Sequence record: MK568540.2 | Strand: one strand, 5' to 3' | Length of the DNA: 64,000 bases | In this document: one piece after another, positions 2,169 to 43,839 of the stretch | How the letters are laid out: the number at the start of each line of letters is the position of its first letter | Numbering within the stretch: the first letter of the stretch is position 1 | Program-made: the position numbers and the translations under genes | The notes under the pieces: generated by a model | What the model was told of the DNA's origin: nothing | The model's input: only the letters and a program-made list of their open reading frames with translations | The model's database searches: none

Positions 2169-2553
2169 TTTGCTTTCTGCTTATATCAATCAAAAAGAAT
2201 TTATCATGGTTTTGCTTATTTTGATTACGATATATCGTCGTAATCAAAATACAACCTTTAATTCCCTTCTCAAATATTATGTAAATATCTTCACGCTTGA
2301 TAGCAAGCTCACGCTTTTCAGCACTGTAATACCAATACAGAACTTCACCTAAGTGCTTGTTTACTGTATGATACAGCATTCTACGCAATGTTGAATGTTC
2401 AGCAGCACAGAATCGGTCATATACTCGATGTGTGAAGTGTTTCTTCATCACAAAGTCAACAGTCCCGACTAAGCCACGCTGCTTCTCAATCGCGTAATTG
2501 TTGAATTCAAATGAAAATCTTTTCCATTTGTACATGAACGAATGCAAATTCAT
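2155..2553 (-). CDS. hypothetical protein, possible RelE/BECR-fold RNase
   Basis: HFxxRxxDR near the N-terminus and ILITTIY strand near the C-terminus; ORF certain, fold speculative. Confidence 0.6.
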   Translation of the reverse strand: MNLHSFMYKWKRFSFEFNNYAIEKQRGLVGTVDFVMKKHFTHRVYDRFCAAEHSTLRRMLYHTVNKHLGEVLYWYYSAEKRELAIKREDIYIIFEKGIKGCILITTIYRNQNKQNHDKFFLIDISRKQNEAN

Positions 2554-2687
2554 AACGTTTTTTCAAACTCATTGATTTGCGAATTAAGCTCTTCGCGAGT
2601 ACGAGCAACTAAAACAGTACCGTCTTTGTATGTCGCGATGAACTGAGCTTTCTTTTCGATTGTCCAATCTAAGCGATTCGTTGTCAT
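2550..2687 (-). CDS. small early hypothetical protein (45 aa)
   Basis: MTTNRLDW start follows AAGAGA RBS just downstream of a sigma70-type promoter; the ORF-track start at 2735 lies inside the promoter. Confidence 0.7.
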   Translation of the reverse strand: MTTNRLDWTIEKKAQFIATYKDGTVLVARTREELNSQINEFEKTL

Positions 2688-2719
2688 AATATTGTTCTCT
2701 TTTCGTTGTCGATGTGAGT

Positions 2720-2748
2720 ATATTACACAAGTCACATCGACAACGCAA
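2720..2748 (-). promoter_or_regulatory. early sigma70-type promoter
   Basis: TTGCGT-17-TAATAT with upstream A-tract; -10 sits in the loop of a 14-bp inverted repeat. Confidence 0.8.
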
Positions 2749-2756
2749 CCACTTTT

Positions 2757-2918
2757 TTACATATTTTCTGTAATTCGGAAAATATTAATCAGTGGGTATT
2801 TGTAAACCATACCGTCTTTCATCATCAAGCAGTAAAGACCGTCTTTGGTGTAAGCGTTCTTTACATTATCATGAACAACTGGCTTGGCTTGTGATAGTAA
2901 ATGTACAGCAATCATCAT
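2757..2918 (-). CDS. small hypothetical protein (53 aa), not in ORF track
   Basis: ATG overlaps the dexA stop; MMIAVHLLSQAKPVVHDNVKNAYTKDGLYCLMMKDGMVYKYPLINIFRITENM fills the gap. Confidence 0.65.
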   Translation of the reverse strand: MMIAVHLLSQAKPVVHDNVKNAYTKDGLYCLMMKDGMVYKYPLINIFRITENM

Positions 2919-3607
2919 AGTAGCCCAAGTTCCTCTTTCTCTTCGTCAGTGAAATCAACCGATACTTCATGACATTCCATTTTCTCGGGTAGTTCTTCTA
3001 AATCAAGTGCGTAACGCGCTGCCATGATAAGCATCATTGCATCTTTCGCACAGTCGTGTACGCCGTTGTGGTGAATGAAACCTGGCATTGCGTCACGACG
3101 AATTGGCACTTTACACATGTCACGTTGTAACATCAATGCTTCAATACGAGTACGAACATCACGGAATTTCCAGAATCGTTCGATGACTGCATGACGCAAG
3201 CCGCTGTACTTGAAGCAATCTGCCATTAACGGGATATCGTAGTTATTACCGCGACAGTACAAGTGTGAACGACCGTCGTAGCGAGTGTTTTCTTCGATCC
3301 ACTCAATGAACAACTTGTGACCTTCTTCAACCGACACGTCTTCTGCGCTAGGTATTAGAATTTCTTTCGCTTCTTTTGATTGCTCAGACCACCATTGCAC
3401 AGTAGCTTTGTTAATGCTTCGCTTACCTTTCTGAGTTTTGATCTCAAACTTGCAACGAAAAGAGTTTTTCACAAGCTCTTGGTAGTCAGGGACTTTCGTA
3501 AAATCGTGCTCGAATTCAACTGCACCCAGTTCAATAACCGCTGCGTCGGGAGTCACGTCGAATCCCTCATAGTCGATTAGAATGTCATAGACGGGTTTAT
3601 CACTCAT
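2915..3607 (-). CDS. dexA: exonuclease A (DEDD 3'-5' exonuclease)
   Basis: IDYE, CRGNNYD, RDVRTRIEAL and HNGVHDCAKD match T4 DexA motifs. Confidence 0.93.
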   Translation of the reverse strand: MSDKPVYDILIDYEGFDVTPDAAVIELGAVEFEHDFTKVPDYQELVKNSFRCKFEIKTQKGKRSINKATVQWWSEQSKEAKEILIPSAEDVSVEEGHKLFIEWIEENTRYDGRSHLYCRGNNYDIPLMADCFKYSGLRHAVIERFWKFRDVRTRIEALMLQRDMCKVPIRRDAMPGFIHHNGVHDCAKDAMMLIMAARYALDLEELPEKMECHEVSVDFTDEEKEELGLL

Positions 3608-3840: not shown

Positions 3841-4352
3841 TATTTCACCCCGCTCTCACCGAACCCACTAGCACCGCGGTCAGTTTCTTCGTCGAAATCA
3901 TCAACTACTTCAAACTGCACGTTTTTCACGTAAGTGTGGAAAATCAACTGACAGATACGATCACCGCGCTCAATATGCAGCACGTCGTCGCCTTCGTTGC
4001 GAATCTTGATCATGATTTCGCCTTGATAGTTCGCGTCGATAATCCCGATTGTGTTTGCAAGGCGTAAGAAGTGCTTGAACCCAAGACCGCTTCGCGGTGC
4101 AATCGCGCCGTATACACCTAAATCAGTGAATACTCGATGTAGTGGGTGCGAACCAATATGAATCTTGACACCAGACGGGATAACGACTGAATCACCCGGT
4201 TGTAGCTCGATTGACTCTTCAATTGCAGCACGCAGATCAATACCCGCGTCATCTGGGTCTTTCACACCAATTGGCTCAATTGCTTTTAGACCAAGTTCTT
4301 TGTTTTCTTTGTAGTGAGGCAGGTAAATAATCTTCATTAAATTTTCTTCCAT
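3840..4352 (-). CDS. dut: trimeric dUTPase
   Basis: AGIDL, PRSGLG, GIIDANYQGEI, QLIF, RGASGFGESG motifs. Confidence 0.97.
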   Translation of the reverse strand: MEENLMKIIYLPHYKENKELGLKAIEPIGVKDPDDAGIDLRAAIEESIELQPGDSVVIPSGVKIHIGSHPLHRVFTDLGVYGAIAPRSGLGFKHFLRLANTIGIIDANYQGEIMIKIRNEGDDVLHIERGDRICQLIFHTYVKNVQFEVVDDFDEETDRGASGFGESGVK

Positions 4353-5395
4353 CTGTTAAGTCGATTTGTAGCCATTAGACCGCTAACGGCATTTTCATAA
4401 ATGTATTGCTGAATGAACTCAGCAGATACACCAGCTTTGACAAAATCATTGATGTCTTTCTTATCAATAATTTGAGGTGGGAGCTTATCCCAAATAACAA
4501 CACGCTCACCCGCTCTGATTAGAACTTGAAGACGCTTTACAACGTCTGGGTGGCGAGGCTCATTATCAAGCGCCCAAATGCGATTCCCCGCATAGGGTGC
4601 ATTTTGTGGACTGACTTGTCCACCTACTATAGCACAGCAATTGTAGAGGAATAAACTATCAATCGGGCCCTCAACGAAAATAACAGGGTCATCTTCATTG
4701 ATACGCTCTGTGCCGTATATCTTGTTGAAATCGTCGTCAATTTTAATGGTCATGTATCGTTGAGCATGTTTGTTTGTCAACGCACGACCTTGAACAGCAA
4801 TCAAACCTTCTTTGTTATAGATAGGTATTACCAATCGAGGGTGGTCATTTCTAATCTCACCTTCGTACAAATCTGGGCGAAGCGTCTTAGCCATTTGAGA
4901 CCAGCCACGAGTAAACCCAAGCAAATGCCACTTGTCTTTAGGGATTTTTCTAGATTCGAGGTATTTGTGCATCACATGACCATCTTTAAGGGCAGTGATA
5001 TTATAGAAAAGTTGCTCTTCTTGTTCTTTCTCAACGACAGTCGCTTCTTTCTTTTCAACGACTGGTTCAGGTTCGCGTTCTTTACGCTCACGAGAATTGC
5101 GCTCTTTGAATAACTCGACGCGATACTGAGAAAACAACGATGGTTCGTGATCTTTCAAAAAAGTATACAGCGATTCGTTATAGTCACAGTTCCAGCAACT
5201 ACAACGTAAATGAATCTCACCAGAACGTGTCTTAACTTCATTAATCCAGAAACGTGTCTTGTACTTGTTCTTTTTCGAGTCACCACAAATCGGGCATCTT
5301 GCATTGATTTTGAATGGACGATGACTATGCACCGTAGGGAGTAGTAATCGATGCTGAAGCATCTTGGCGTATTGTATATCAATCAATATTTGCAT
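4337..5395 (-). CDS. 61: DNA primase
   Basis: CPICGDSKKNKYKTRFW zinc domain, EGPIDSLF TOPRIM, DNEPR, KDIND. Confidence 0.96.
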   Translation of the reverse strand: MQILIDIQYAKMLQHRLLLPTVHSHRPFKINARCPICGDSKKNKYKTRFWINEVKTRSGEIHLRCSCWNCDYNESLYTFLKDHEPSLFSQYRVELFKERNSRERKEREPEPVVEKKEATVVEKEQEEQLFYNITALKDGHVMHKYLESRKIPKDKWHLLGFTRGWSQMAKTLRPDLYEGEIRNDHPRLVIPIYNKEGLIAVQGRALTNKHAQRYMTIKIDDDFNKIYGTERINEDDPVIFVEGPIDSLFLYNCCAIVGGQVSPQNAPYAGNRIWALDNEPRHPDVVKRLQVLIRAGERVVIWDKLPPQIIDKKDINDFVKAGVSAEFIQQYIYENAVSGLMATNRLNRWKKI

Positions 5396-5415
5396 AATTC
5401 AACCTCCGTGTAGTG

Positions 5416-5444
5416 ATTATACACGGCATCACGATACGATAAAC
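5416..5444 (-). promoter_or_regulatory. promoter for primase, with hairpin covering the RBS
   Basis: GTTTAT-17-TATAAT; inverted repeat CCGTGTA/TACACGG (5406-5426) overlaps GGAGG. Confidence 0.7.
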
Positions 5445-5446
5445 AT

Positions 5447-5468
5447 AAAAAAGCCCCGTTTCCGAGGC
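5447..5468 (-). terminator. intrinsic terminator
   Basis: GCCTCG-GAAA-CGGGGC followed by a T-run. Confidence 0.85.
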
Positions 5469-5474
5469 GTTTTA

Positions 5475-5954
5475 TTATTCGAAATGTCTGAACTTCTTCA
5501 GCTTTTTCTTTTTCTTTTTCTTACCGATAGTTTCAGGACCTGCATTAGTTACAGCACCAGTCGTTTCACCAGAAGCAATCGACTCTGGTGAGCTACTACC
5601 GTCACCCGCATCACCTGCAACAACAGCTTCTTCGACTCGAATACACTCTTTCGCGAAATCTTCAGATAACCCGTATTCTTTTGCAAGCTCAATCAGCAAC
5701 AAATAAGACGCGCCATAATCAAGTGCTGTTTTACCGCCTGGTAATGCACCAACCATGCGCTTGATATTTCTCACAGTAACATGAAACATCGTCCAGTTAC
5801 TTTTCTCTTGTGCAGTTACAGGGTCACGCAACTTCTTACCATCTGCGTCGATGATACCCATTCGATATGCTTCCCAACGTTCAAAACGAAGATGAAGCAA
5901 ACGAGACAGACGAAGAGCATAAAAACCATCTGCACCACGTTTAGCTACACTCAT
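5475..5954 (-). CDS. conserved T4-like protein (61.1-like) with Lys-rich tail
   Basis: WEAYRMGIIDADGKKLR.P.T..EKS.WT.FH..VRNIKRM family motif, SIASGETTGAVTN, KKKKKKK; lies next to primase. Confidence 0.7.
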   Translation of the reverse strand: MSVAKRGADGFYALRLSRLLHLRFERWEAYRMGIIDADGKKLRDPVTAQEKSNWTMFHVTVRNIKRMVGALPGGKTALDYGASYLLLIELAKEYGLSEDFAKECIRVEEAVVAGDAGDGSSSPESIASGETTGAVTNAGPETIGKKKKKKKLKKFRHFE

Positions 5955-6778
5955 TATGCCCCCAAGATTTGCTCAAGTTGACGATCAAAGATCTTCTCTG
6001 CTTCATCAAGTGGTAATGGTACGCTGCGCATGAATTCGTGCAGATTATCTTCGCGAATCAGATTTTCAATAGTACTAGATGGTACTTTGTTCTTGACTTC
6101 AACGATCTCGAATCGTGTTCCACCTACACGTAGGAAGTGACGACCTAGACGGCGATACTCAGCTACTTTGTTCGCTTCTACAAATGCAAACACGCGAGTG
6201 ATACCTTTTTGAATCATAGTCTCTACTTCAGCAAACATCACGCCTTTCGGTGCAACATCGACATCAGAGAACGATTCAAATAATTCAACGCGCTCTTGAA
6301 GTGATAAAACCTTGTTCTGAGCTTCAGGTACAAACACTTTACCAACAGCACCAACGTGTTCACACGCTTCAGATAATGTTTTAGTCAATTCTTTATGACC
6401 AACTGAAGGAATGCTTGAATCCACGTCCATGATACACGCAGCGTCAATCGCACACTCATTCACAACGGTTTCATGTTCGAAGAAATCTTTTTCCGAAACG
6501 ACAAATAGACCCTCATCAAGTTTAGCTGCAATTGCTTCAGCTTCTTGTTGTTGTTTCTTCATCGTTGCTTCTTCTTTTTCAGCAGCAGATTCTTTGTCAA
6601 ACATGGTGATTTTGCCGCGAATTGCGTCTCGAACACGAATGTCCATCATCGGTGTGATGTTCGCCCCGAGTTCTTTTTTCTTTTGCGTATATAGTTTCTC
6701 GATTTCAACTACACCGTCTTTGGTAGTACATTGGTGAACCGACGCAATAAGTTCTTCCAATTTATCTTTGATAGCCAT
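5954..6778 (-). CDS. fusion of a UvsW.1-like helical domain and a degenerate HIGH-class nucleotidyltransferase-like domain
   Basis: N-terminal CTTKDGVVEIEKLY...DIRVRDAIRGK resembles T4 UvsW.1; C-terminal PSVGHKEL, GITRVFAFVEANKVAEY, SSTIENLI..DNLHEF..SVP resembles phage cytidylyltransferase-like proteins. Confidence 0.6.
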   Translation of the reverse strand: MAIKDKLEELIASVHQCTTKDGVVEIEKLYTQKKKELGANITPMMDIRVRDAIRGKITMFDKESAAEKEEATMKKQQQEAEAIAAKLDEGLFVVSEKDFFEHETVVNECAIDAACIMDVDSSIPSVGHKELTKTLSEACEHVGAVGKVFVPEAQNKVLSLQERVELFESFSDVDVAPKGVMFAEVETMIQKGITRVFAFVEANKVAEYRRLGRHFLRVGGTRFEIVEVKNKVPSSTIENLIREDNLHEFMRSVPLPLDEAEKIFDRQLEQILGA

Positions 6779-6781
6779 TAG

Positions 6782-7627
6782 CTACTCCTCGTAAACAATC
6801 GTATTTTTAGTAATTCTTGATTCGAATACAACTTCAACACGTACACCATAAGGCAATGCCTTAGAACGGCGACATGCATCATTTCTAATCAACATATACG
6901 GGTGATATACAGTATCTTTAATATCTTTCGCGTTCAACAAAACATCACCGTTAATATGCAAGGTACCGCGTTTGAATACAAAATCATCTAGTGTAAAGCT
7001 ATTGACTACAACAAGACCGTTATTGAGAATGTCTGAACCAAATACAACATGATTTATTTCGTCGTCTCGTAGTCTGCGTGCGATTGGCTGGCTAAGTCTC
7101 TTCACTTTACCATCGTCAGAATAGTCCGATAATGTAACCATCTTCTTGACTATCATTTGTGATAAAAGCTTACGAGCTTCAGTGCCGTGAATAACGTCAG
7201 TACTAGCCCAACGCTCGGCATTTGATTTTTTAATCGAAATCGGAAAATCGCCGCTTACGGTCTTCAATACCATATCGGCTTTTTTGTTGTTTTTTGTGTC
7301 GTGACCAGTCATTTCAATCGACTGAACACCTTTTATTACTCGTCGACCAATTTTAATCCGAGTACAGCCAGAATCAATGTGTTGCTTTACAATATTATAG
7401 AAATTGCGTTCATTCTCGATGCCCGGATTAGATGTTGGTTTGACGTATACTCTGCATTTTTCCATCTGTATACAACCAATTGAACTGCCTGGGTCGCACT
7501 TCTTGTACGTCCCGTCAAGCTCTTTCGCAAGTTTAACAATTAGACCAAGTCGATTTTCATCTGTGTAGATAACGATCTTTCGGCTATTGATAATTCTCGC
7601 GTCATATCTTAACAAAACATCTATCAT
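6782..7627 (-). CDS. putative PD-(D/E)XK nuclease
   Basis: E ... KKADMV...ISIKK catalytic-like spacing. Confidence 0.6.
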   Translation of the reverse strand: MIDVLLRYDARIINSRKIVIYTDENRLGLIVKLAKELDGTYKKCDPGSSIGCIQMEKCRVYVKPTSNPGIENERNFYNIVKQHIDSGCTRIKIGRRVIKGVQSIEMTGHDTKNNKKADMVLKTVSGDFPISIKKSNAERWASTDVIHGTEARKLLSQMIVKKMVTLSDYSDDGKVKRLSQPIARRLRDDEINHVVFGSDILNNGLVVVNSFTLDDFVFKRGTLHINGDVLLNAKDIKDTVYHPYMLIRNDACRRSKALPYGVRVEVVFESRITKNTIVYEE

Positions 7628-7629
7628 AG

Positions 7630-7678
7630 TGCATGAACACCATCTTTAATACCATACCAGTATTTAGATGTTCATGCA
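7630..7678 (-). promoter_or_regulatory. RBS-sequestering hairpin with an internal late promoter
   Basis: TGCATGAACA/TGTTCATGCA arms with inner pairing; CTAAATA at 7661-7667 in the 5' arm; 3' arm ends 2 nt before the ATG. Confidence 0.75.
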
Positions 7679-7691
7679 GATAGACTACCAC

Positions 7692-8216
7692 TTAGAAGTC
7701 GTAACTTACCTCTTTGGACTCACGACGTTTGTCAAGAAGTTGTCGCAGATCAGTTAAACGAATCATCGGCTGACCGATGTTACGCTGCAAGTTATCACAA
7801 CAAACGTTCACGTAACGATAGTCATCAATCGTTGCGTAATGCACGTGCCCGTGAATGCTGAAATGACCACGCAGTTCATCGGGGTGTAATGGAAAATGAC
7901 TCAACCAACCCAACTTTTTGTACTTTTCACAACCGCGAATCACGTCAAACGCACGCATGTAGCTTGAAACAGGAAGATCGTCATGATTCCCGCCATATTG
8001 TACTTTACGACCCGGTAAACCAGCAAGAATTCCAACAGCTTCTTCAGTAAATGCAGTATCACCAAGCATAATCACAGTGTCACGCTTGCGAACGTTCTTC
8101 AACCAGAAGTCAACAATCCAGTCGGTATTCGCTTGAGTGTCTTCAATGTCATCCCGAAACTTACCAATATTTTTGTGACCTAAATGCAGATCACTTGTAA
8201 TCCAAACACAACTCAT
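7692..8216 (-). CDS. calcineurin-like metallophosphoesterase
   Basis: SDLHLGH, LGD, GNHD, HFP, HGHVH motifs. Confidence 0.93.
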   Translation of the reverse strand: MSCVWITSDLHLGHKNIGKFRDDIEDTQANTDWIVDFWLKNVRKRDTVIMLGDTAFTEEAVGILAGLPGRKVQYGGNHDDLPVSSYMRAFDVIRGCEKYKKLGWLSHFPLHPDELRGHFSIHGHVHYATIDDYRYVNVCCDNLQRNIGQPMIRLTDLRQLLDKRRESKEVSYDF

Positions 8217-19213: not shown

Positions 19214-19244
19214 GTGTCGTTTCCTATATGTTTATATCGTGTGT

Positions 19245-19251
19245 CTAAATA
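19245..19251 (+). promoter_or_regulatory. late (gp55-type) promoter for gene 34
   Basis: CTAAATA variant of T4 TATAAATA, upstream of the gene 34 RBS. Confidence 0.65.
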
Positions 19252-26693: not shown

Positions 26694-26858
26694 ATGCAGA
26701 CTGATTACATTAAATACAAAGTAGTGCATGGCAATAATTCAAGAACTTTTGAAGAGGAAGTGCAGAAACTACTTAACGAGGGATGGGAACTTCATGGCTC
26801 TTTACAAGTCGATGGGTTTTATCTCTACCAATCACTTATAAAAAAGGGGTTAGACTAA
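26694..26858 (+). CDS. small protein (DUF1737-like, 54 aa), not in ORF track
   Basis: MQTDYIKYKVVHGNNSRTFEEEVQKLLNEGWELHGSLQVDGFYLYQSLIKKGLD; YKVV...V..LL.EGW.L.G...YQ pattern. Confidence 0.7.
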   Translation: MQTDYIKYKVVHGNNSRTFEEEVQKLLNEGWELHGSLQVDGFYLYQSLIKKGLD

Positions 26859-27028
26859 TGGCACATTGTGTTGTATGTAAACAACCTATTAAAGAAGGCG
26901 ATGTCACTATTGATACGCCACAAGGCACAGTTCACGCAGGTCAATGTCAGCAACATTTATCAGAAATGTCTATTTCTGAGTCTGGTGGCGAAACGCAACT
27001 TGTAGAAACACAACTGCTAAACGGGTAA
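26858..27028 (+). CDS. uvsY.-2: UvsY.-2-like conserved small protein
   Basis: CVVCK.PI......T..G.VH.G.C.....E..ISES...QL.ETQLL matches the T4 uvsY.-2 pattern; start at MAHC. Confidence 0.85.
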   Translation: MAHCVVCKQPIKEGDVTIDTPQGTVHAGQCQQHLSEMSISESGGETQLVETQLLNG

Positions 27029-27032
27029 AGAT

Positions 27033-27143
27033 ATGAGCAAGAATCGTAAACGAGATCGCGGGTTCTTCGACTGGCTATGGGCGCCATTTGAATTATTTTT
27101 TGAGTTAATCGGTGCGATTCTCTCAGCAATCTTTTCAGACTAA
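27033..27143 (+). CDS. small membrane peptide (36 aa), not in ORF track
   Basis: MSKNRKRDRGFFDWLWAPFELFFELIGAILSAIFSD: basic N-terminus and hydrophobic helix; ends at the terminator. Confidence 0.6.
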   Translation: MSKNRKRDRGFFDWLWAPFELFFELIGAILSAIFSD

Positions 27144-27144
27144 T

Positions 27145-27173
27145 AAAAAAAGGGAGCAATTTGCTCCCTTTTT
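27145..27173. terminator. bidirectional terminator between the uvsY operon and uvsW
   Basis: A-run, GGGAGC/GCTCCC stem, T-run. Confidence 0.9.
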
Positions 27174-27178
27174 CGTAT

Positions 27179-28711
27179 CTATGCGGCAAGATCTACTTTC
27201 TTGACTGCGTATTTGAACTCTTCTTGGTTGTAAAGCTCAATACGTTGCATACCATGCTTCATAGTATAATTTACGTGAGTGTACGGCTTCTTAGCGTTCT
27301 TACGTTTCGGCTTGATTGCCAAGTTGTCGATAATGTCAAACAGCTTCGCCGTAACTTTCGAACCGTGTTTACGTAGAATACGACCAATCGACTGCAAGTT
27401 GATGATCTTACTCTTCGTTGGGTGTGCGAAAATTACATTGTGTAGTTTCTTGATACTGATACCAGTCGAGAATACACCGTATGATGCGACAATGATCGCC
27501 CCATCAATATCTTCTGCAATCTTCTTCACATGCGTACGGTCGTCTGTTTTAGTCTCACCAGATACGTAGAACACTTTCTCTGGGTCATATACGCTCTTCA
27601 ACGCTTCGTAAAGCAATTTACCGTGTTTGATGTTCTTGAATAGCAATAACGTATTTTCGCCTTTCTTCGCGCTTAAATGATGCGCAAGCTTAATCAAGTA
27701 ACGATTTCGCTGCTTGTTCTCAAGAATGAATTTCATTTCTTCTTGATATGAACTACCTTTCATCTCGTCACGTAACGGCTGTGGGTATTCAAGCATCAAG
27801 CAATTGATCTTCAGATCTGTTACTTGCCCTTCTTCCATTAGCTGTGCAGTTGAAACAGGTCGGAAAATATCACCGAATGAACCAACGTACTGTAGAATAT
27901 TCGCTTTACCGTCTCGAAGTGAGCCAGTAAGACCGATTTTGTATTCACAGTTTGTCATTTTCTTGATTATACCGTCTAATGACTTACCTGTTGCTAAGTG
28001 ACACTCATCGACTAAAAGCATACCGAATTGGTCAAACCATTCTTTCGGTTGTTTTACAGCAGATTGCCATGTAGATACAACGATTCGGCAGTCACCGATT
28101 GCGTCTCGATCAACACCACCACGAATCTGATAAATGTCGCTGTGTTCGAATAAACGATAATCTAAGAAGTCATCGCGCATTTGCTGAACAAGTGCAGTTG
28201 TAGGTACAATCACTAATACTTTCTGAAGTTCGTGCTCTTCTTGTGCTAAGAACCATTTAGTAATCAGCGACTGAATTAATGATTTACCCGCAGATGTTGG
28301 TAGATTCAATAGACTGTGTTGGTTGTTAATTCCGTGAAACACAGAGTCCATCTGATACCAATACGGTGAAATCTTATTCGACCCTGAGTAGATGTCAATA
28401 GACTCAACCCATGCTTCGAAATCTTCACGAGAAATTTTCTCAATCGGATCTAGCATTGGATCGGTTTCAATCGTATACATCATATTTGATGCAAACGCTT
28501 TAGCTTGTCCGACTAGACCGTATGGCAATAGACCTTGATACGTCATTAGTCGAATTTTGCCATCCCAAATGCCCATTTTAAATTTTGGGTTAAATTTGTA
28601 CCCATCTGTTAGAAATGAGAAATAGTCAATCATTTCGTGAGTGATGCTTGGCTCGGCTACGACTCTCGCATAACTCTCATCGTGGTACTCAATTTTAATG
28701 TCACATGTCAT
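27179..28711 (-). CDS. uvsW: SF2 RNA-DNA/DNA helicase
   Basis: LPTSAGKS, VDECH, GLTGS, QSIGR.LR; start at MTCDIKIEY (the longer start crosses the promoter). Confidence 0.97.
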   Translation of the reverse strand: MTCDIKIEYHDESYARVVAEPSITHEMIDYFSFLTDGYKFNPKFKMGIWDGKIRLMTYQGLLPYGLVGQAKAFASNMMYTIETDPMLDPIEKISREDFEAWVESIDIYSGSNKISPYWYQMDSVFHGINNQHSLLNLPTSAGKSLIQSLITKWFLAQEEHELQKVLVIVPTTALVQQMRDDFLDYRLFEHSDIYQIRGGVDRDAIGDCRIVVSTWQSAVKQPKEWFDQFGMLLVDECHLATGKSLDGIIKKMTNCEYKIGLTGSLRDGKANILQYVGSFGDIFRPVSTAQLMEEGQVTDLKINCLMLEYPQPLRDEMKGSSYQEEMKFILENKQRNRYLIKLAHHLSAKKGENTLLLFKNIKHGKLLYEALKSVYDPEKVFYVSGETKTDDRTHVKKIAEDIDGAIIVASYGVFSTGISIKKLHNVIFAHPTKSKIINLQSIGRILRKHGSKVTAKLFDIIDNLAIKPKRKNAKKPYTHVNYTMKHGMQRIELYNQEEFKYAVKKVDLAA

Positions 28712-28737
28712 GATTTTTCTCTCTATGCGAGTTTTGT

Positions 28738-28762
28738 CTAAATATGTATAACTGTATTTATA
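28738..28762. promoter_or_regulatory. divergent late promoters
   Basis: CTAAATA on plus (28738-28744) and TATAAATA on minus (28755-28762). Confidence 0.7.
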
Positions 28763-28775
28763 GAGGTCTAAATTC

Positions 28776-28985
28776 ATGACAAGAGACGAAATGTTTTACA
28801 AGATGAAAGATGGTTGCTTTAAGTTTGAGCATAAAGGCAAGAAATATCACGCGACTTTATGCAAGCATTATCTACCACATCTTGATTGCAATCGAGAAGA
28901 ACAACGTAAAAATGAAAACGGTGCAGATAATGAACTTACATTTTTCGATTTAAATCGAAATGTGTGGGTAACAATTGAATGCTAA
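28776..28985 (+). CDS. small SH3-like protein (WYL_2/DUF2693-like)
   Basis: F....G....ATL...Y.P ... FFDL..NVW pattern. Confidence 0.5.
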   Translation: MTRDEMFYKMKDGCFKFEHKGKKYHATLCKHYLPHLDCNREEQRKNENGADNELTFFDLNRNVWVTIEC

Positions 28986-31014: not shown

Positions 31015-31023
31015 CGTTTGCGT

Positions 31024-31030
31024 CTAAATA
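31024..31030 (+). promoter_or_regulatory. late promoter
   Basis: CTAAATA between the terminator and the RBS. Confidence 0.65.
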
Positions 31031-31052
31031 ATAGTAAACAAAGGGGTTAACA

Positions 31053-31646
31053 ATGATAGAATTTTTAACAGAAATGGACAAAGCTAAACAAACCGGTAGA
31101 TGGGCTCAATTTAAAGCAGCAACATCGGGTTCGAAAGGTGAAGTTAAAAAGCGTATGCAGCGCAAAGGTGGCTTCTGGGGTGTGTTTGCAGGTTTGATCG
31201 CGAGTGCGACAGCATCGGGTGAACTTAGAAAGCACAATAAGTCACTAGAAGACCATAAGCTAAGAATGGAGCGTGCAGCAGTGAACACAATTCACAGTCT
31301 GAATGTTCTTAAAGACGTAATCGAGCTTGAACGTCCTCGTGACGAAGTAATGAAAGCTGCAAAGCGTTTAAAGCTTGATAACATGGAAATGAAGAAATAC
31401 GCAACCGAAATGATTCGTGTCGTAGATGAATACAAGCGTGTTCATGACGAAGATAAGAAGGCAGGTGCGTTTCGTTTTAATGTGAAAGAATACGACCGTC
31501 ATGATTTTCGTGAGATTTACCATCACTTGAACATGATTGAAGATAGCACATTTTACGTCGATAAAGCAGCGTCATCGGCTATGACTGGCGATACTGAATA
31601 CGCAATTCGTATGATTCGCAATATTACAAACGCAGCAACGAGGTAA
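31053..31646 (+). CDS. hypothetical late protein, putative internal head protein
   Basis: MIEFLTE leader (L-X-E gp21-type site), helical, one hydrophobic segment. Confidence 0.65.
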   Translation: MIEFLTEMDKAKQTGRWAQFKAATSGSKGEVKKRMQRKGGFWGVFAGLIASATASGELRKHNKSLEDHKLRMERAAVNTIHSLNVLKDVIELERPRDEVMKAAKRLKLDNMEMKKYATEMIRVVDEYKRVHDEDKKAGAFRFNVKEYDRHDFREIYHHLNMIEDSTFYVDKAASSAMTGDTEYAIRMIRNITNAATR

Positions 31647-37894: not shown

Positions 37895-39439
37895 TTATAG
37901 ACCCTTAACGAATACACGACGGAAGTAAGCGTTTTTACCCATTGAAGCTGCAACAGGCGCGCCGTTACCAACTTTTTCAGCAGCCTTAGTAGGATCTGCG
38001 AATGGGTTAACTTGAATACCGTAACGAGTTTTGAAACCAATTACAGGTTGGAAGTTCTTGCTGTCTGAACCACGTAGTGGAGTCAGCGGTACGTATGGTG
38101 AGTAGAACACACCCGCGTCCATTTCAGTAGAACCTTTGAAACCAACTGTGAAGTAATCGTTCACTGCGTATTGGTCGATGAACACTTTGAAGCGACCACC
38201 TAGAACACCCGCGAACACAGTTTGGTTTGTGTCAGTGTTCATTGAACCGTCTTGCATACCTTGTGCAGCAGGGCCAACAAGAGTATCAGTCATTGATAGT
38301 GCAGAAACTACGTTGCGTGATGCAATGATGAAGTTACCGTTACCACGACCAGTTTGACGACCGATTTCGTTCGCTTCTTTCTCAATTTGAATTAGTAGAG
38401 CTTTGTAAGCTTCACCAGCCCAACGAGCACCTTTAACGTCTACAGCGTCTGCGAAGTCGAATACACCCGCTGCGCCTTGACCTTGAGTCCAACCAGACTT
38501 ACCGATTTGCGCTTGAGAGTTAACTAGGTTAACGATTTCGCGGTTAAGCTCAACCATAACTTCGTTAGCAAGAATACCGCTAAGTTCAGCGTCAGCGTCT
38601 AGACCGTGTACAGCACGTAGATCTTGTGCAAGCTCGATTGAGTATTGAGCTTTCAATTGACGTGATTTCGCTTCAACAACTTGTTTGTCGATGCGGAATG
38701 ACATCTCGTTCCACTCGTTGTTGCTTGAACCGTTGAAGTTCTCTTGTAGTTCAGCCTGAGATGTTGCCATACCAGCGTCGATCTCAACTAGAAGACCACC
38801 TGCAACTGCGTCAGTGTATTCTGTAGCAGTCATTTCACCTGCAACTGCTAGAGTAACAGCGCCAAGTGCTAGGAAGTAACGAGTGTCAACGTCGCCGCCA
38901 GAAGTAGTTACTTCAGCTTTGTACGGAGTACCGTCAGTTGCAGCACCAGTAGTTGGGAAATCTGCAATTGTTGATGCAGCAGCTTGACCAGAGAACGAAG
39001 CGTCAGCTTGACGAGTCGGGTGGAAAGCTTCTTTACCAGTTAGCGGGTCTTTACCGTATACTGAGCGAAGTGTGAATACTTGGCTAGTTGGGCCAGTCAT
39101 TGGCTGAACACCAGCGATATCGAATGCGATAAGCTGAGGAATAGCACGACGAACCATACCCATTACAGTCGGACCGATGTTTGTTACTGCACCAGTAGTA
39201 ACACCTTGAGCGATGTTAGACGGATCGTAACCATGGTCACCGTTAACTACAGCTTCGTTTAGACCAGCATTGAATGCTTCGATTAACTGTGGGTCACGGT
39301 ACATTGGATCGTTGTTGATGTCGCGATCTTGGTTTTCAAAGATTTTCGACATGATTTTTTGCTTAGTTGCAGTCGCAATCTCTGGCATTTCCGCACCGTC
39401 TGCTTCAAGCAATTCTTTCCATTTTTCAGTTAGGTTCAT
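37895..39439 (-). CDS. 23: major capsid protein
   Basis: LIAFDIAGVQPMTGPT, KSRQLKAQYSIELAQDLRAVHG, FQPVIGFKTRYG. Confidence 0.99.
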   Translation of the reverse strand: MNLTEKWKELLEADGAEMPEIATATKQKIMSKIFENQDRDINNDPMYRDPQLIEAFNAGLNEAVVNGDHGYDPSNIAQGVTTGAVTNIGPTVMGMVRRAIPQLIAFDIAGVQPMTGPTSQVFTLRSVYGKDPLTGKEAFHPTRQADASFSGQAAASTIADFPTTGAATDGTPYKAEVTTSGGDVDTRYFLALGAVTLAVAGEMTATEYTDAVAGGLLVEIDAGMATSQAELQENFNGSSNNEWNEMSFRIDKQVVEAKSRQLKAQYSIELAQDLRAVHGLDADAELSGILANEVMVELNREIVNLVNSQAQIGKSGWTQGQGAAGVFDFADAVDVKGARWAGEAYKALLIQIEKEANEIGRQTGRGNGNFIIASRNVVSALSMTDTLVGPAAQGMQDGSMNTDTNQTVFAGVLGGRFKVFIDQYAVNDYFTVGFKGSTEMDAGVFYSPYVPLTPLRGSDSKNFQPVIGFKTRYGIQVNPFADPTKAAEKVGNGAPVAASMGKNAYFRRVFVKGL

Positions 39440-39477: not shown

Positions 39478-39485
39478 TATTTATA
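39478..39485 (-). promoter_or_regulatory. late promoter for gene 23
   Basis: Perfect TATAAATA. Confidence 0.8.
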
Positions 39486-43813: not shown

Positions 43814-43839
43814 TATTTAGAGGGGCTAAAAAGCCCCTC
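43814..43839 (-). promoter_or_regulatory. hairpin plus late promoter for gene 19
   Basis: GAGGGGCT/AGCCCCTC hairpin followed by CTAAATA. Confidence 0.6.

Follow-up and report, generated by a model that had tools for sequence, protein, structure and literature searches.

The 64,000-nucleotide stretch of sequence record MK568540.2 analysed here, called the window throughout, carries on its minus strand three tightly coupled open reading frames (ORFs): ORF281, ORF274 and ORF159. We suggest, at about even odds (a probability of roughly 0.5), that they form a late cassette gated at translation in the style of T4 and encoding a nuclease, a fusion of UvsW.1 with a transferase-like domain, and a head-directed gp61.1. 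What carries this reading is a stable, conserved RNA hairpin over the start of ORF281, a late-promoter-like box in the apical part of that hairpin and, within gp61.1, a copy of the cleavage junction of the capsid protein gp23. Late timing, packaging and the enzyme activities are what we infer from the sequence. A preliminary description of this DNA had already placed three coupled genes here, and their coordinates and sizes proved exact. The parts of the cassette, in the order in which they would be transcribed, are as follows.

7619..7685, minus strand: RNA hairpin of two stems (outer 7 bp, inner 12 bp), the late box lying in its apical part
7661..7668, minus strand: late-promoter-like box TCTAAATA, with one mismatch to the T4 late consensus TATAAATA
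6782..7627, minus strand: ORF281, 281 aa
5954..6778, minus strand: ORF274, 274 aa
5475..5954, minus strand: ORF159, the long form of gp61.1, 159 aa
5447..5468, minus strand: intrinsic terminator (stem 5468-5453 with 6 pairs, 5 of them G-C, a GAAA loop, and six T at 5452-5447)

Only 3 nt separate ORF281 from ORF274, and the stop of ORF274 overlaps the start of ORF159 by 1 nt.

The proposed gate at the start of ORF281

Folding of the minus strand from 7685 to 7619 gives -25.3 kcal/mol (z = -3.05), and 0 of 200 shuffled sequences were equally stable. The AUG of ORF281 (7627-7625) is located between the two stems, where it abuts the 3' arm, and a GGUG element resembling a Shine-Dalgarno (SD) sequence sits within that arm (7641-7638), 10 nt upstream of the AUG. 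A stable helix pairing the SD element and/or the start codon, as in gates of the T4 type, is therefore present. Hairpin and box are nearly invariant in the phages KVP40, nt-1 and D480, whereas the flanking end of the upstream gene varies; the D480 counterpart has a z-score of -3.55. Across 5 phages the pairing is kept in 100% of 123 cells, against only 18-46% in slid controls, while a shuffle control (93/500) is given no power by five sequences. Phage 1.081.O has four stem substitutions, all of which keep the pairs: a double change turns C-G into U-A, and two more changes each affect one side only. In D479, at 45% protein identity, the leader is unlike this one, yet a GATAAATA box is again followed by a hairpin, of 10 bp, that covers SD and AUG. 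An Rfam scan of 5200-8000 matched no family. Fold energy, z-score and the pairing kept in five phages together bear out the hairpin that had been proposed at the head of the first gene.

The perfect consensus TATAAATA occurs at six sites in the window, every one of which precedes a long minus-strand ORF by 10-43 nt, gp23 and uvsW among them, and the variant TCTAAATA found in the hairpin is reused before structural genes and inh:

39478-39485: perfect TATAAATA of gp23 (sequence motif)
28755-28762: perfect TATAAATA of uvsW (sequence motif)
19244-19251, plus strand: TCTAAATA upstream of the tail fibre gene for gp34, same 8-mer
43814-43821, minus strand: TCTAAATA upstream of the tail tube gene for gp19, same 8-mer
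28737-28744, plus strand: TCTAAATA upstream of the inh unit, in which a small ORF leads the inh gene, same 8-mer

We regard the box as credible as a late promoter because of its position and because of these other uses of the same variant, and the embedding of a late-type promoter in the hairpin, also part of the preliminary description, holds up at the level of sequence and structure. Many T4 late promoters deviate from the consensus by single bases, and the late box of Aeromonas phage Aeh1 has a/gC at -13/-12 (reviewed in PMC2988020). The box in the loop is invariant in five phages despite variation at adjacent loop positions. A perfect TATAAATA lies 28 nt before the ORF281 homologue of EniLVp02, and late-type boxes lie directly before 61.1 in Ac42 (GATAAATA, 18 nt) and KPN6 (AATAAATA, 13 nt). 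These relatives have a late box and no strong hairpin; therefore the late box is the deeper feature and the strong hairpin a clade-specific addition. With the box numbered -13 to -6 (PMC2988020), late transcripts would start at about 7655, a point that lies within the apical loop, downstream of the entire 5' arm. At the level of sequence, this is the promoter placement of a T4-type gate, by which late transcripts would be made without the 5' arm.

In the model that we propose, transcripts arriving from the nrd-phosphoesterase block upstream would carry the whole hairpin and would be poorly translated or partly stopped, and late transcripts starting near 7655 would lack the 5' arm and would be translated. 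Late transcripts would escape the gate, and therefore the three close-packed genes would be made late. The sequence gives this regulatory reading good support, and the late-only translation named in the preliminary description is a prediction of it. It would be risky to make the nuclease early, a danger shared by T4 endonuclease VII and the homing endonucleases, which are under the same gate. A terminator at the end of the cassette had also been proposed, and the element at 5447-5468, ahead of gene 61, is a clean match to an intrinsic terminator. KVP40, D480, 1.081.O and Ac42 have a hairpin and T-run at this position with differing stem sequences, in D479 the stem differs again and a weaker T-run follows it, and KPN6 has a hairpin and no T-run; no hairpin terminator was found between 61.1 and 61 in EniLVp02 or T4.

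One further copy of TCTAAATA lies 22 nt upstream of a 197-aa ORF at 31023-31643 on the plus strand (phrog_16422), which is likely, judging by this box, to be an additional late gene.

gp61.1 and the gp23 cleavage junction

Homologues of ORF159 occur in 656 phage records; in RB43, RB16 and Ac42 they are annotated as 61.1, each time with gene 61 directly downstream, a position that ORF159 shares with other Straboviridae. By homology and by this position, ORF159 is gp61.1 in its long form; the T4 protein is a short form of 54 residues. The segments compared below are these:

5520..5654, minus strand: gp23-junction module of gp61.1 (residues 101-145), with a V107-E108-E109 / A110 site, after which the beginning of the gp23* N-arm is copied
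5478..5519, minus strand: Lys-rich basic tail of gp61.1 (residues 146-159); the end is K/R-rich in every gp61.1 examined
39146..39286, minus strand: the comparator, gp23 residues 52-98 with the maturation junction and the start of the N-arm, within the gp23 gene at 37895-39439

Residues 107-148 of gp61.1 match residues 60-98 of the phage's own gp23 with 50% identity over 42 aa (expectation value, E, 3e-8), and the V-E-E/A of gp61.1 aligns on the L-N-E/A of gp23, the counterpart of the site behind residue 65 at which T4 gp23 is cut. The protease gp21 removes 65 residues from gp23 (PMC7136217). T4 gp61.1 likewise matches T4 gp23 residues 57-93 (46% identity, E 6e-9), and has no match to T4 gp24. 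In a six-frame scan of the window, two junction motifs were confined to gp23 and gp61.1. Ten gp61.1 sequences share a common plan, which runs from hydrophobic-x-Glu through x-(V/M)-V-(A/S)-G-D and G-x-x-(S/T)-G-(A/S/P)-(V/I) to the basic tail; every form has the hydrophobic-x-Glu site, and its cleavage-site Glu is invariant. The preliminary description had called ORF159 a 61.1-like protein with a VEE/A site reminiscent of prohead core proteins. Both the identity and the site stand, the latter through its exact alignment with the gp23 cut. The likeness to core proteins gives way to one with the gp23 cleavage junction and N-arm and, in T4, with the targeting leader of the internal proteins (IPs).

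At its N-terminus, T4 gp61.1 agrees over 7-10 residues with the leaders of IPI, IPII and IPIII, the first seven being identical to those of IPI; the capsid targeting sequence consists of these leaders (PMC3012670). The gp23 segment that is copied in gp61.1 is the start of the N-arm; this segment is disordered while the head is unexpanded and extended once it is mature. A role for the segment as a portal-binding 'N-whisker' was considered and dropped; the whisker belongs to the portal protein gp20 (PMC7136217). As a separate observation, the IP leader and the nine residues before the T4 gp23 cut (57-65) share aromatic-x-x-F-(I/L)-x-E, and on this pattern the IP targeting leader may itself imitate the gp23 junction, as a copy of its P9-P1 segment.

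As part of the proposed cassette, gp61.1 would enter the prohead, be cut by gp21 after Glu109 and leave in the head a basic peptide of about 50 residues, consisting of the N-arm mimic and the Lys tail. We put forward tentatively, with the odds against it, that gp61.1 is an unrecognised precursor of a head-internal peptide across the Straboviridae. It would get into the prohead by mimicking the gp23 junction (or by the IP leader in the T-even phages), gp21 would cut it at a site of this kind, and the product would stay with the packaged DNA or at the inner capsid wall. Literature searches on gp61.1 gave nothing beyond listings as a conserved ORF of unknown function, and since 2006 both uvsW.1 and 61.1 have figured among the conserved ORFs of the T4 family that lack a function (PMC1524935); the mimicry between gp61.1 and gp23 appears to be undescribed so far. 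Several GenBank records label gp61.1 homologues as 'major capsid protein', 'capsid vertex protein' or 'capsid protein', which we consider over-calls because a short gp23 match lies behind them.

The probable nuclease, the UvsW.1 fusion and their locus

ORF281 is probably a restriction-endonuclease-like nuclease of the PD-(D/E)XK type, judging from its structure model (predicted local distance difference test, pLDDT, 89.7). Compared with the predicted structures of BFVD, the model matches CviJI with E 1.9e-8, a template modelling (TM) score of 0.56 over 260 columns and a probability of 1.0, and Nt.CviQII with E 7e-7; a PBCV endonuclease and cyanophage proteins were also matched. The core fold is that of restriction endonucleases, as in the CviJI group of PD-(D/E)XK enzymes, and at the level of the model such a fold is supported for the protein that had earlier been called a PD-(D/E)XK-like nuclease. 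We collected 36 homologues and judged the residue invariance of E73, D118 and S131-x-K133 in 29 sequences; the invariant residues of ORF281 are N72, E73, K116, D118, S131, K133, N136, W140 and the FGSD at 196-199. In the model, E73, D118 and S131-x-K133 fall on helix 68-85 and on strands 119-123 and 126-133, with Ser in place of the usual acid in a motif that was picked by eye. Pfam held no domain for ORF281 or its 36 homologues, and searches of Pfam, NCBIfam and PDB sequences gave no match for ORF281 or gp61.1; weak Pfam matches to Ribosomal_L18p (in ORF281), Sp-DndD, CTNNBL and UPF0102 were set aside. There is no evidence for CviJI-like specificity, because the window shows no depletion of the RGCY class as a whole, though GGCC by itself is depleted. 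ORF281 occurs in 70 phage records with a patchy distribution over Vibrio, Stenotrophomonas and Xanthomonas phages and some cyanophages. ORF281 was also considered as a possible replacement for endonuclease VII; relatives of T4 gp49 occur in 74 records, counted over Vibrio phages in general.

ORF274, according to a profile match and a fold match, is a UvsW.1 domain fused to a domain with the nucleotidyltransferase fold of PPAT, which upholds the fusion proposed earlier and places its transferase part in the HxGH (cytidylyltransferase-like) class. The two domains are:

6572..6739, minus strand: UvsW.1 domain (residues 14-69), PF11637 with E 2.5e-33 and 114 bits against a cutoff of 25
5957..6511, minus strand: Rossmann-like HxGH-type nucleotidyltransferase fold (residues ~90-274), from a fold search of the model

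PF11637 is matched by 14/14 members of the ORF274 family, and the family profile matches the T4 UvsW.1 structure 2JPN with E 1e-11. In the model (pLDDT 86.1), the C-terminal domain has fold matches to PPAT/CoaD, FAD synthetase, TmcAL and NaMNAT with a probability of 1.0, E 1e-4 and a TM score (on the target) of ~0.6. There are 39 PDB matches at E <= 1e-3, mostly to PPAT with FAD synthetase and TmcAL besides, and NaMNAT follows at E 1.3e-3. Remnants of the two class motifs can be seen in P-S-V-G-H (124-128) and S-S-T (235-237). PF01467 stays below threshold in ORF274, and 1/14 relatives reaches E 4.8e-4 with it. A second nuclease in the C-terminal domain, raised by the weak UPF0102 match, is contradicted by the fold search. 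The domain probably binds or transfers a nucleotide, as its modelled fold suggests. It is rare, with ~7 convincing clusters in an exhaustive search, all of the same two-domain length and always fused behind UvsW.1, and ORF274 occurs in 58 phage records. In the window, no UvsW-1 domain was found after uvsW (27179-28777, minus strand), a gene that converges on plus-strand DUF2685, a YqeY-like gene and uvsY (region 26783-28777). T4 uvsW is late in RNA as well as in protein, and a late cassette fits the UvsW.1 ancestry of ORF274 for that reason. Homologues of ORF274 in GenBank are called 'DNA helicase' or 'ATP-dependent DNA helicase', which are over-calls from short or legacy matches.

In the proposed cassette, UvsW.1, the native partner of the late gene uvsW, would thus be joined to a nucleotide-binding or -transferring domain that is linked in turn to a nuclease. 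The best hint that nuclease and transferase may work together comes from gene order in Stenotrophomonas phage Moby, where Moby049 is an ORF281 homologue (E 2.6e-34), Moby051, one gene on, is a canonical PF01467 transferase, and both come after a gp41-like helicase. We take this recurrence of the pair to mean that transferase and nuclease are linked in function. D479 and EniLVp02 retain the order ORF281-ORF274-61.1 at 27-45% protein identity (the EniLVp02 homologue of ORF281 has 34% identity, E 1.6e-32), and Ac42 and KPN6 have 61.1 and neither of the other two genes. Co-conservation of the trio is true of the KVP40-like Vibrio phages, D479 and EniLVp02 only, and gp61.1 is found family-wide without its two companions. 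Since gp61.1 is family-wide and ORF281 and ORF274 are present in few lineages, it is uncertain that the three genes make up a single functional module.

The source phage is a Va3/VH7D-type, KVP40-like Schizotequatrovirus (Straboviridae), and its genome was already known. Over bases 5300-7900, Va3 (MK568540.2) matches the window at 100%, R11Z, phi-ST2, VH7D, ValKK3 and others at 99.7-100% identity, and KVP40 at ~86%. In the near-identical and KVP40 records, the three minus-strand genes are labelled 'hypothetical' or carry borrowed or wrong names. By the annotation of VH7D, the minus-strand order is uvsX, 40, 41, nrdD, two ORFs, nrdG, phosphoesterase, ORF281, ORF274, ORF159, 61, dut, dexA. The cassette sits in a variable region between the helicase gene 41 and the primase gene 61, an interval whose content differs among T4, RB43, Ac42 and KPN6. 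Its immediate neighbours are:

7692..8216, minus strand: metallophosphoesterase, the upstream neighbour and the final gene of the nrdD-nrdG early-type block, separated from ORF281 by a gap of 64 nt
4337..5395, minus strand: gene 61 primase, the downstream neighbour

Some variations on this layout were seen. In RB43 (2243-2977 of the compared locus) and phT4A (1-37), a DNA methyltransferase gene lies directly upstream of 61.1, where the Vibrio phages carry the nuclease-transferase pair. EniLVp02 has an extra DUF6267 gene (2371-3453 of the compared locus) between its homologues of ORF281 and ORF274, and D479 has an additional small ORF (5665-5901 of the compared locus) between 61.1 and 61. At 5406-5426 on the minus strand, a 7-bp hairpin (CCGTGTA / TACACGG) with a TATAAT hexamer inside it lies directly next to the GGAGG of gene 61; an ACGGAGG end with a hairpin before gene 61 is also present in KVP40, 1.081.O and D479, and the element may serve translational or promoter control of the primase gene. 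Finally, palindrome avoidance is strong in the window (1-64000), with observed/expected ratios of 0.25 for GGCC, 0.52 for CCGG and 0.60 for GATC. At least 8 six-base palindromes (e.g. CTGCAG, AGCGCT, CAGCTG and CGATCG) are absent, with 7-40 copies expected for most. This avoidance suggests unmodified DNA that evades restriction by avoiding the sites.

Alternative explanations and comparison with known systems

Several observations weigh against a gated late cassette with a head-directed product. The bare motif CTAAATA occurs 12 times against 9.5 expected, so that the motif alone is not above chance, as the box deviates by one base from TATAAATA. No late box was found near 61.1 in T4 or RB43, folding found no significant leader structure in EniLVp02, Ac42, KPN6 or T4, and the strong hairpin is limited to one clade. 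Hundreds of phages have gp61.1 without ORF281 or ORF274. The T4 61.1 RNA is of the early class, and the protein escaped detection in a proteome of the whole infection; T4 ipI-III and e are likewise 'early RNA, late protein' in the table that classes 61.1 RNA as early. The long form of gp61.1 is without the N-terminal targeting leader that T4 gp61.1 has, and in five gp61.1/gp23 phage pairs the gp23 segment hardly varies, so that co-variation between the two says little either way. As to the enzymes, the match of ORF281 to CviJI and Nt.CviQII sets one predicted structure against another, and a Foldseek search of the PDB gave nothing significant, its weak list being rich in HincII, SwaI, HinP1I, MspI and Hjc. 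Some relatives of ORF274 have T-N-G-H and others have lost both motifs; catalysis is doubtful because HxGH and SST are not conserved across the family.

One alternative is that the three genes are unrelated passengers of a hyperplastic 41-61 region, comprising gp61.1 as the ancestral neighbour of gene 61, a selfish or accessory ORF281 that behaves like a homing endonuclease and is silenced by the hairpin, and a relocated UvsW.1, which share a transcript and no common function. The unequal record counts (656 for gp61.1, 70 for ORF281, 58 for ORF274), the variable content of the interval in T4, RB43, Ac42 and KPN6 and the patchiness of ORF281 all fit this explanation, as do the DUF6267 gene inside the EniLVp02 cassette and the typical hairpin gating of homing endonucleases (PMC3014915). 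We nevertheless think it unlikely, given that the gene order survives at 27-45% identity in D479 and EniLVp02, that the nuclease-transferase pairing recurs in Moby, and that ORF281 is at one site in all KVP40-like genomes with no sign of presence/absence polymorphism. It is quite improbable, in our view, that the hairpin is mainly a terminator, attenuator or RNA-stability element of the early nrd-phosphoesterase unit, with an incidental TCTAAATA and with early or middle expression by read-through. The stem is indeed followed by GUUUUGUU, behind the phosphoesterase gene no other terminator is predicted up to the hairpin, the bare motif shows no enrichment and the T4 61.1 RNA is early. However, the U-rich run lies inside the coding sequence of ORF281, and the start codon is covered, which a plain terminator does not need; moreover, the box is invariant in five phages, relatives without the hairpin keep a late box there (one of them perfect), and the variant box serves three structural-gene units. 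The two roles are in any case compatible, because a terminator-like hairpin would strengthen the gate.

A different fate for gp61.1 is also conceivable, in which it stays unpackaged and, in the cytoplasm or at the membrane, acts as a decoy or competitor for something that partners the gp23 junction, for example the protease gp21, the scaffold or the folding apparatus, tuning head assembly against replication. Its copied segment is the very part of gp23 that is recognised and cut in maturation, its gene lies in the replication cluster beside 61 and near 41 and 40 (the head vertex chaperone), and the missing leader of the long form and the absence of gp61.1 from the T4 proteome would both be in keeping with such a role. 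But T4 gp61.1 shares its leader with packaged internal proteins, the conserved basic tail suits contact with DNA, and late boxes stand directly before 61.1 in Ac42 and KPN6, and so we find this unlikely. At the other extreme, all three proteins might be loaded into the head and injected as a kit for DNA-end processing or anti-defence, a packaging that the preliminary description had suggested for the nuclease and transferase. The predicted late expression, the restriction and nicking enzymes among the chlorovirus relatives of ORF281 and the packaging-type features of gp61.1 point that way; ORF281 and ORF274 have neither a targeting leader nor a gp23-like junction, the motif scan of the window having found only gp23 and gp61.1, there is no sign that either of them is packaged or injected, and we regard the idea as very improbable.

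These findings have several consequences. The mimicry by gp61.1 leads one to expect a small, new constituent of T4-type heads and gives a hint at the mechanism of the targeting leader. The UvsW.1 fusion and its link to a nuclease would point to nucleic-acid processing late in infection. Two genes long without function, uvsW.1 and 61.1, both gain testable leads, and the mislabelling of their homologues in GenBank as 'DNA helicase' (ORF274) and 'major capsid protein' (gp61.1) can be corrected.

Among known proteins, gp61.1 is closest to two. Like T4 IPI-III, T4 gp61.1 has the 7-10 residue leader ending in Glu, and all gp61.1 forms have hydrophobic-x-Glu. Unlike IPI-III, the Vibrio-phage protein has its site internally (after residue 109) and no N-terminal leader, and downstream of the predicted cut lie the gp23* N-arm copy and the basic tail rather than a folded effector. 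With gp23 it shares 46-50% identity over 37-42 residues, a stretch running from P9 to P'32 around the cut, in T4 as well as in the phage of the window, and it is without the entire capsid fold. ORF281 resembles CviJI and Nt.CviQII in its whole-chain fold (TM ~0.5-0.56) and has a conserved E...D...S-x-K pattern, though the comparison is between predicted structures and sequence identity is just 11-15%. The N-terminal domain of ORF274 corresponds to T4 UvsW.1 (2JPN) by PF11637 and by profile; in contrast to the T4 protein, it is not a stand-alone gene downstream of uvsW and is joined to an enzyme-like domain of 180 residues. That domain has the Rossmann-like fold of PPAT and the other HxGH nucleotidyltransferases (PF01467) with remnants of HxGH and SST, and differs from those enzymes in its degenerate, unconserved motifs and its fusion behind UvsW.1.

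The gate has the clearest precedents. In T4 e, soc, 49 and I-TevI and in Aeh1 mobE, a hairpin masks the ribosome-binding site, and a late promoter lies in the DNA of its 5' strand (PMC3014915). The vibriophage leader has the same two elements, a stable helix over SD and AUG and a late box whose transcripts would start past the 5' arm, and its first gated gene encodes a probable nuclease, as gene 49, I-TevI and mobE encode nucleases. It differs from these in its variant box TCTAAATA and in leading a three-gene unit with a terminator of its own. The gate follows a design already known from T4, carried over here to a vibriophage and to a late box of variant sequence.

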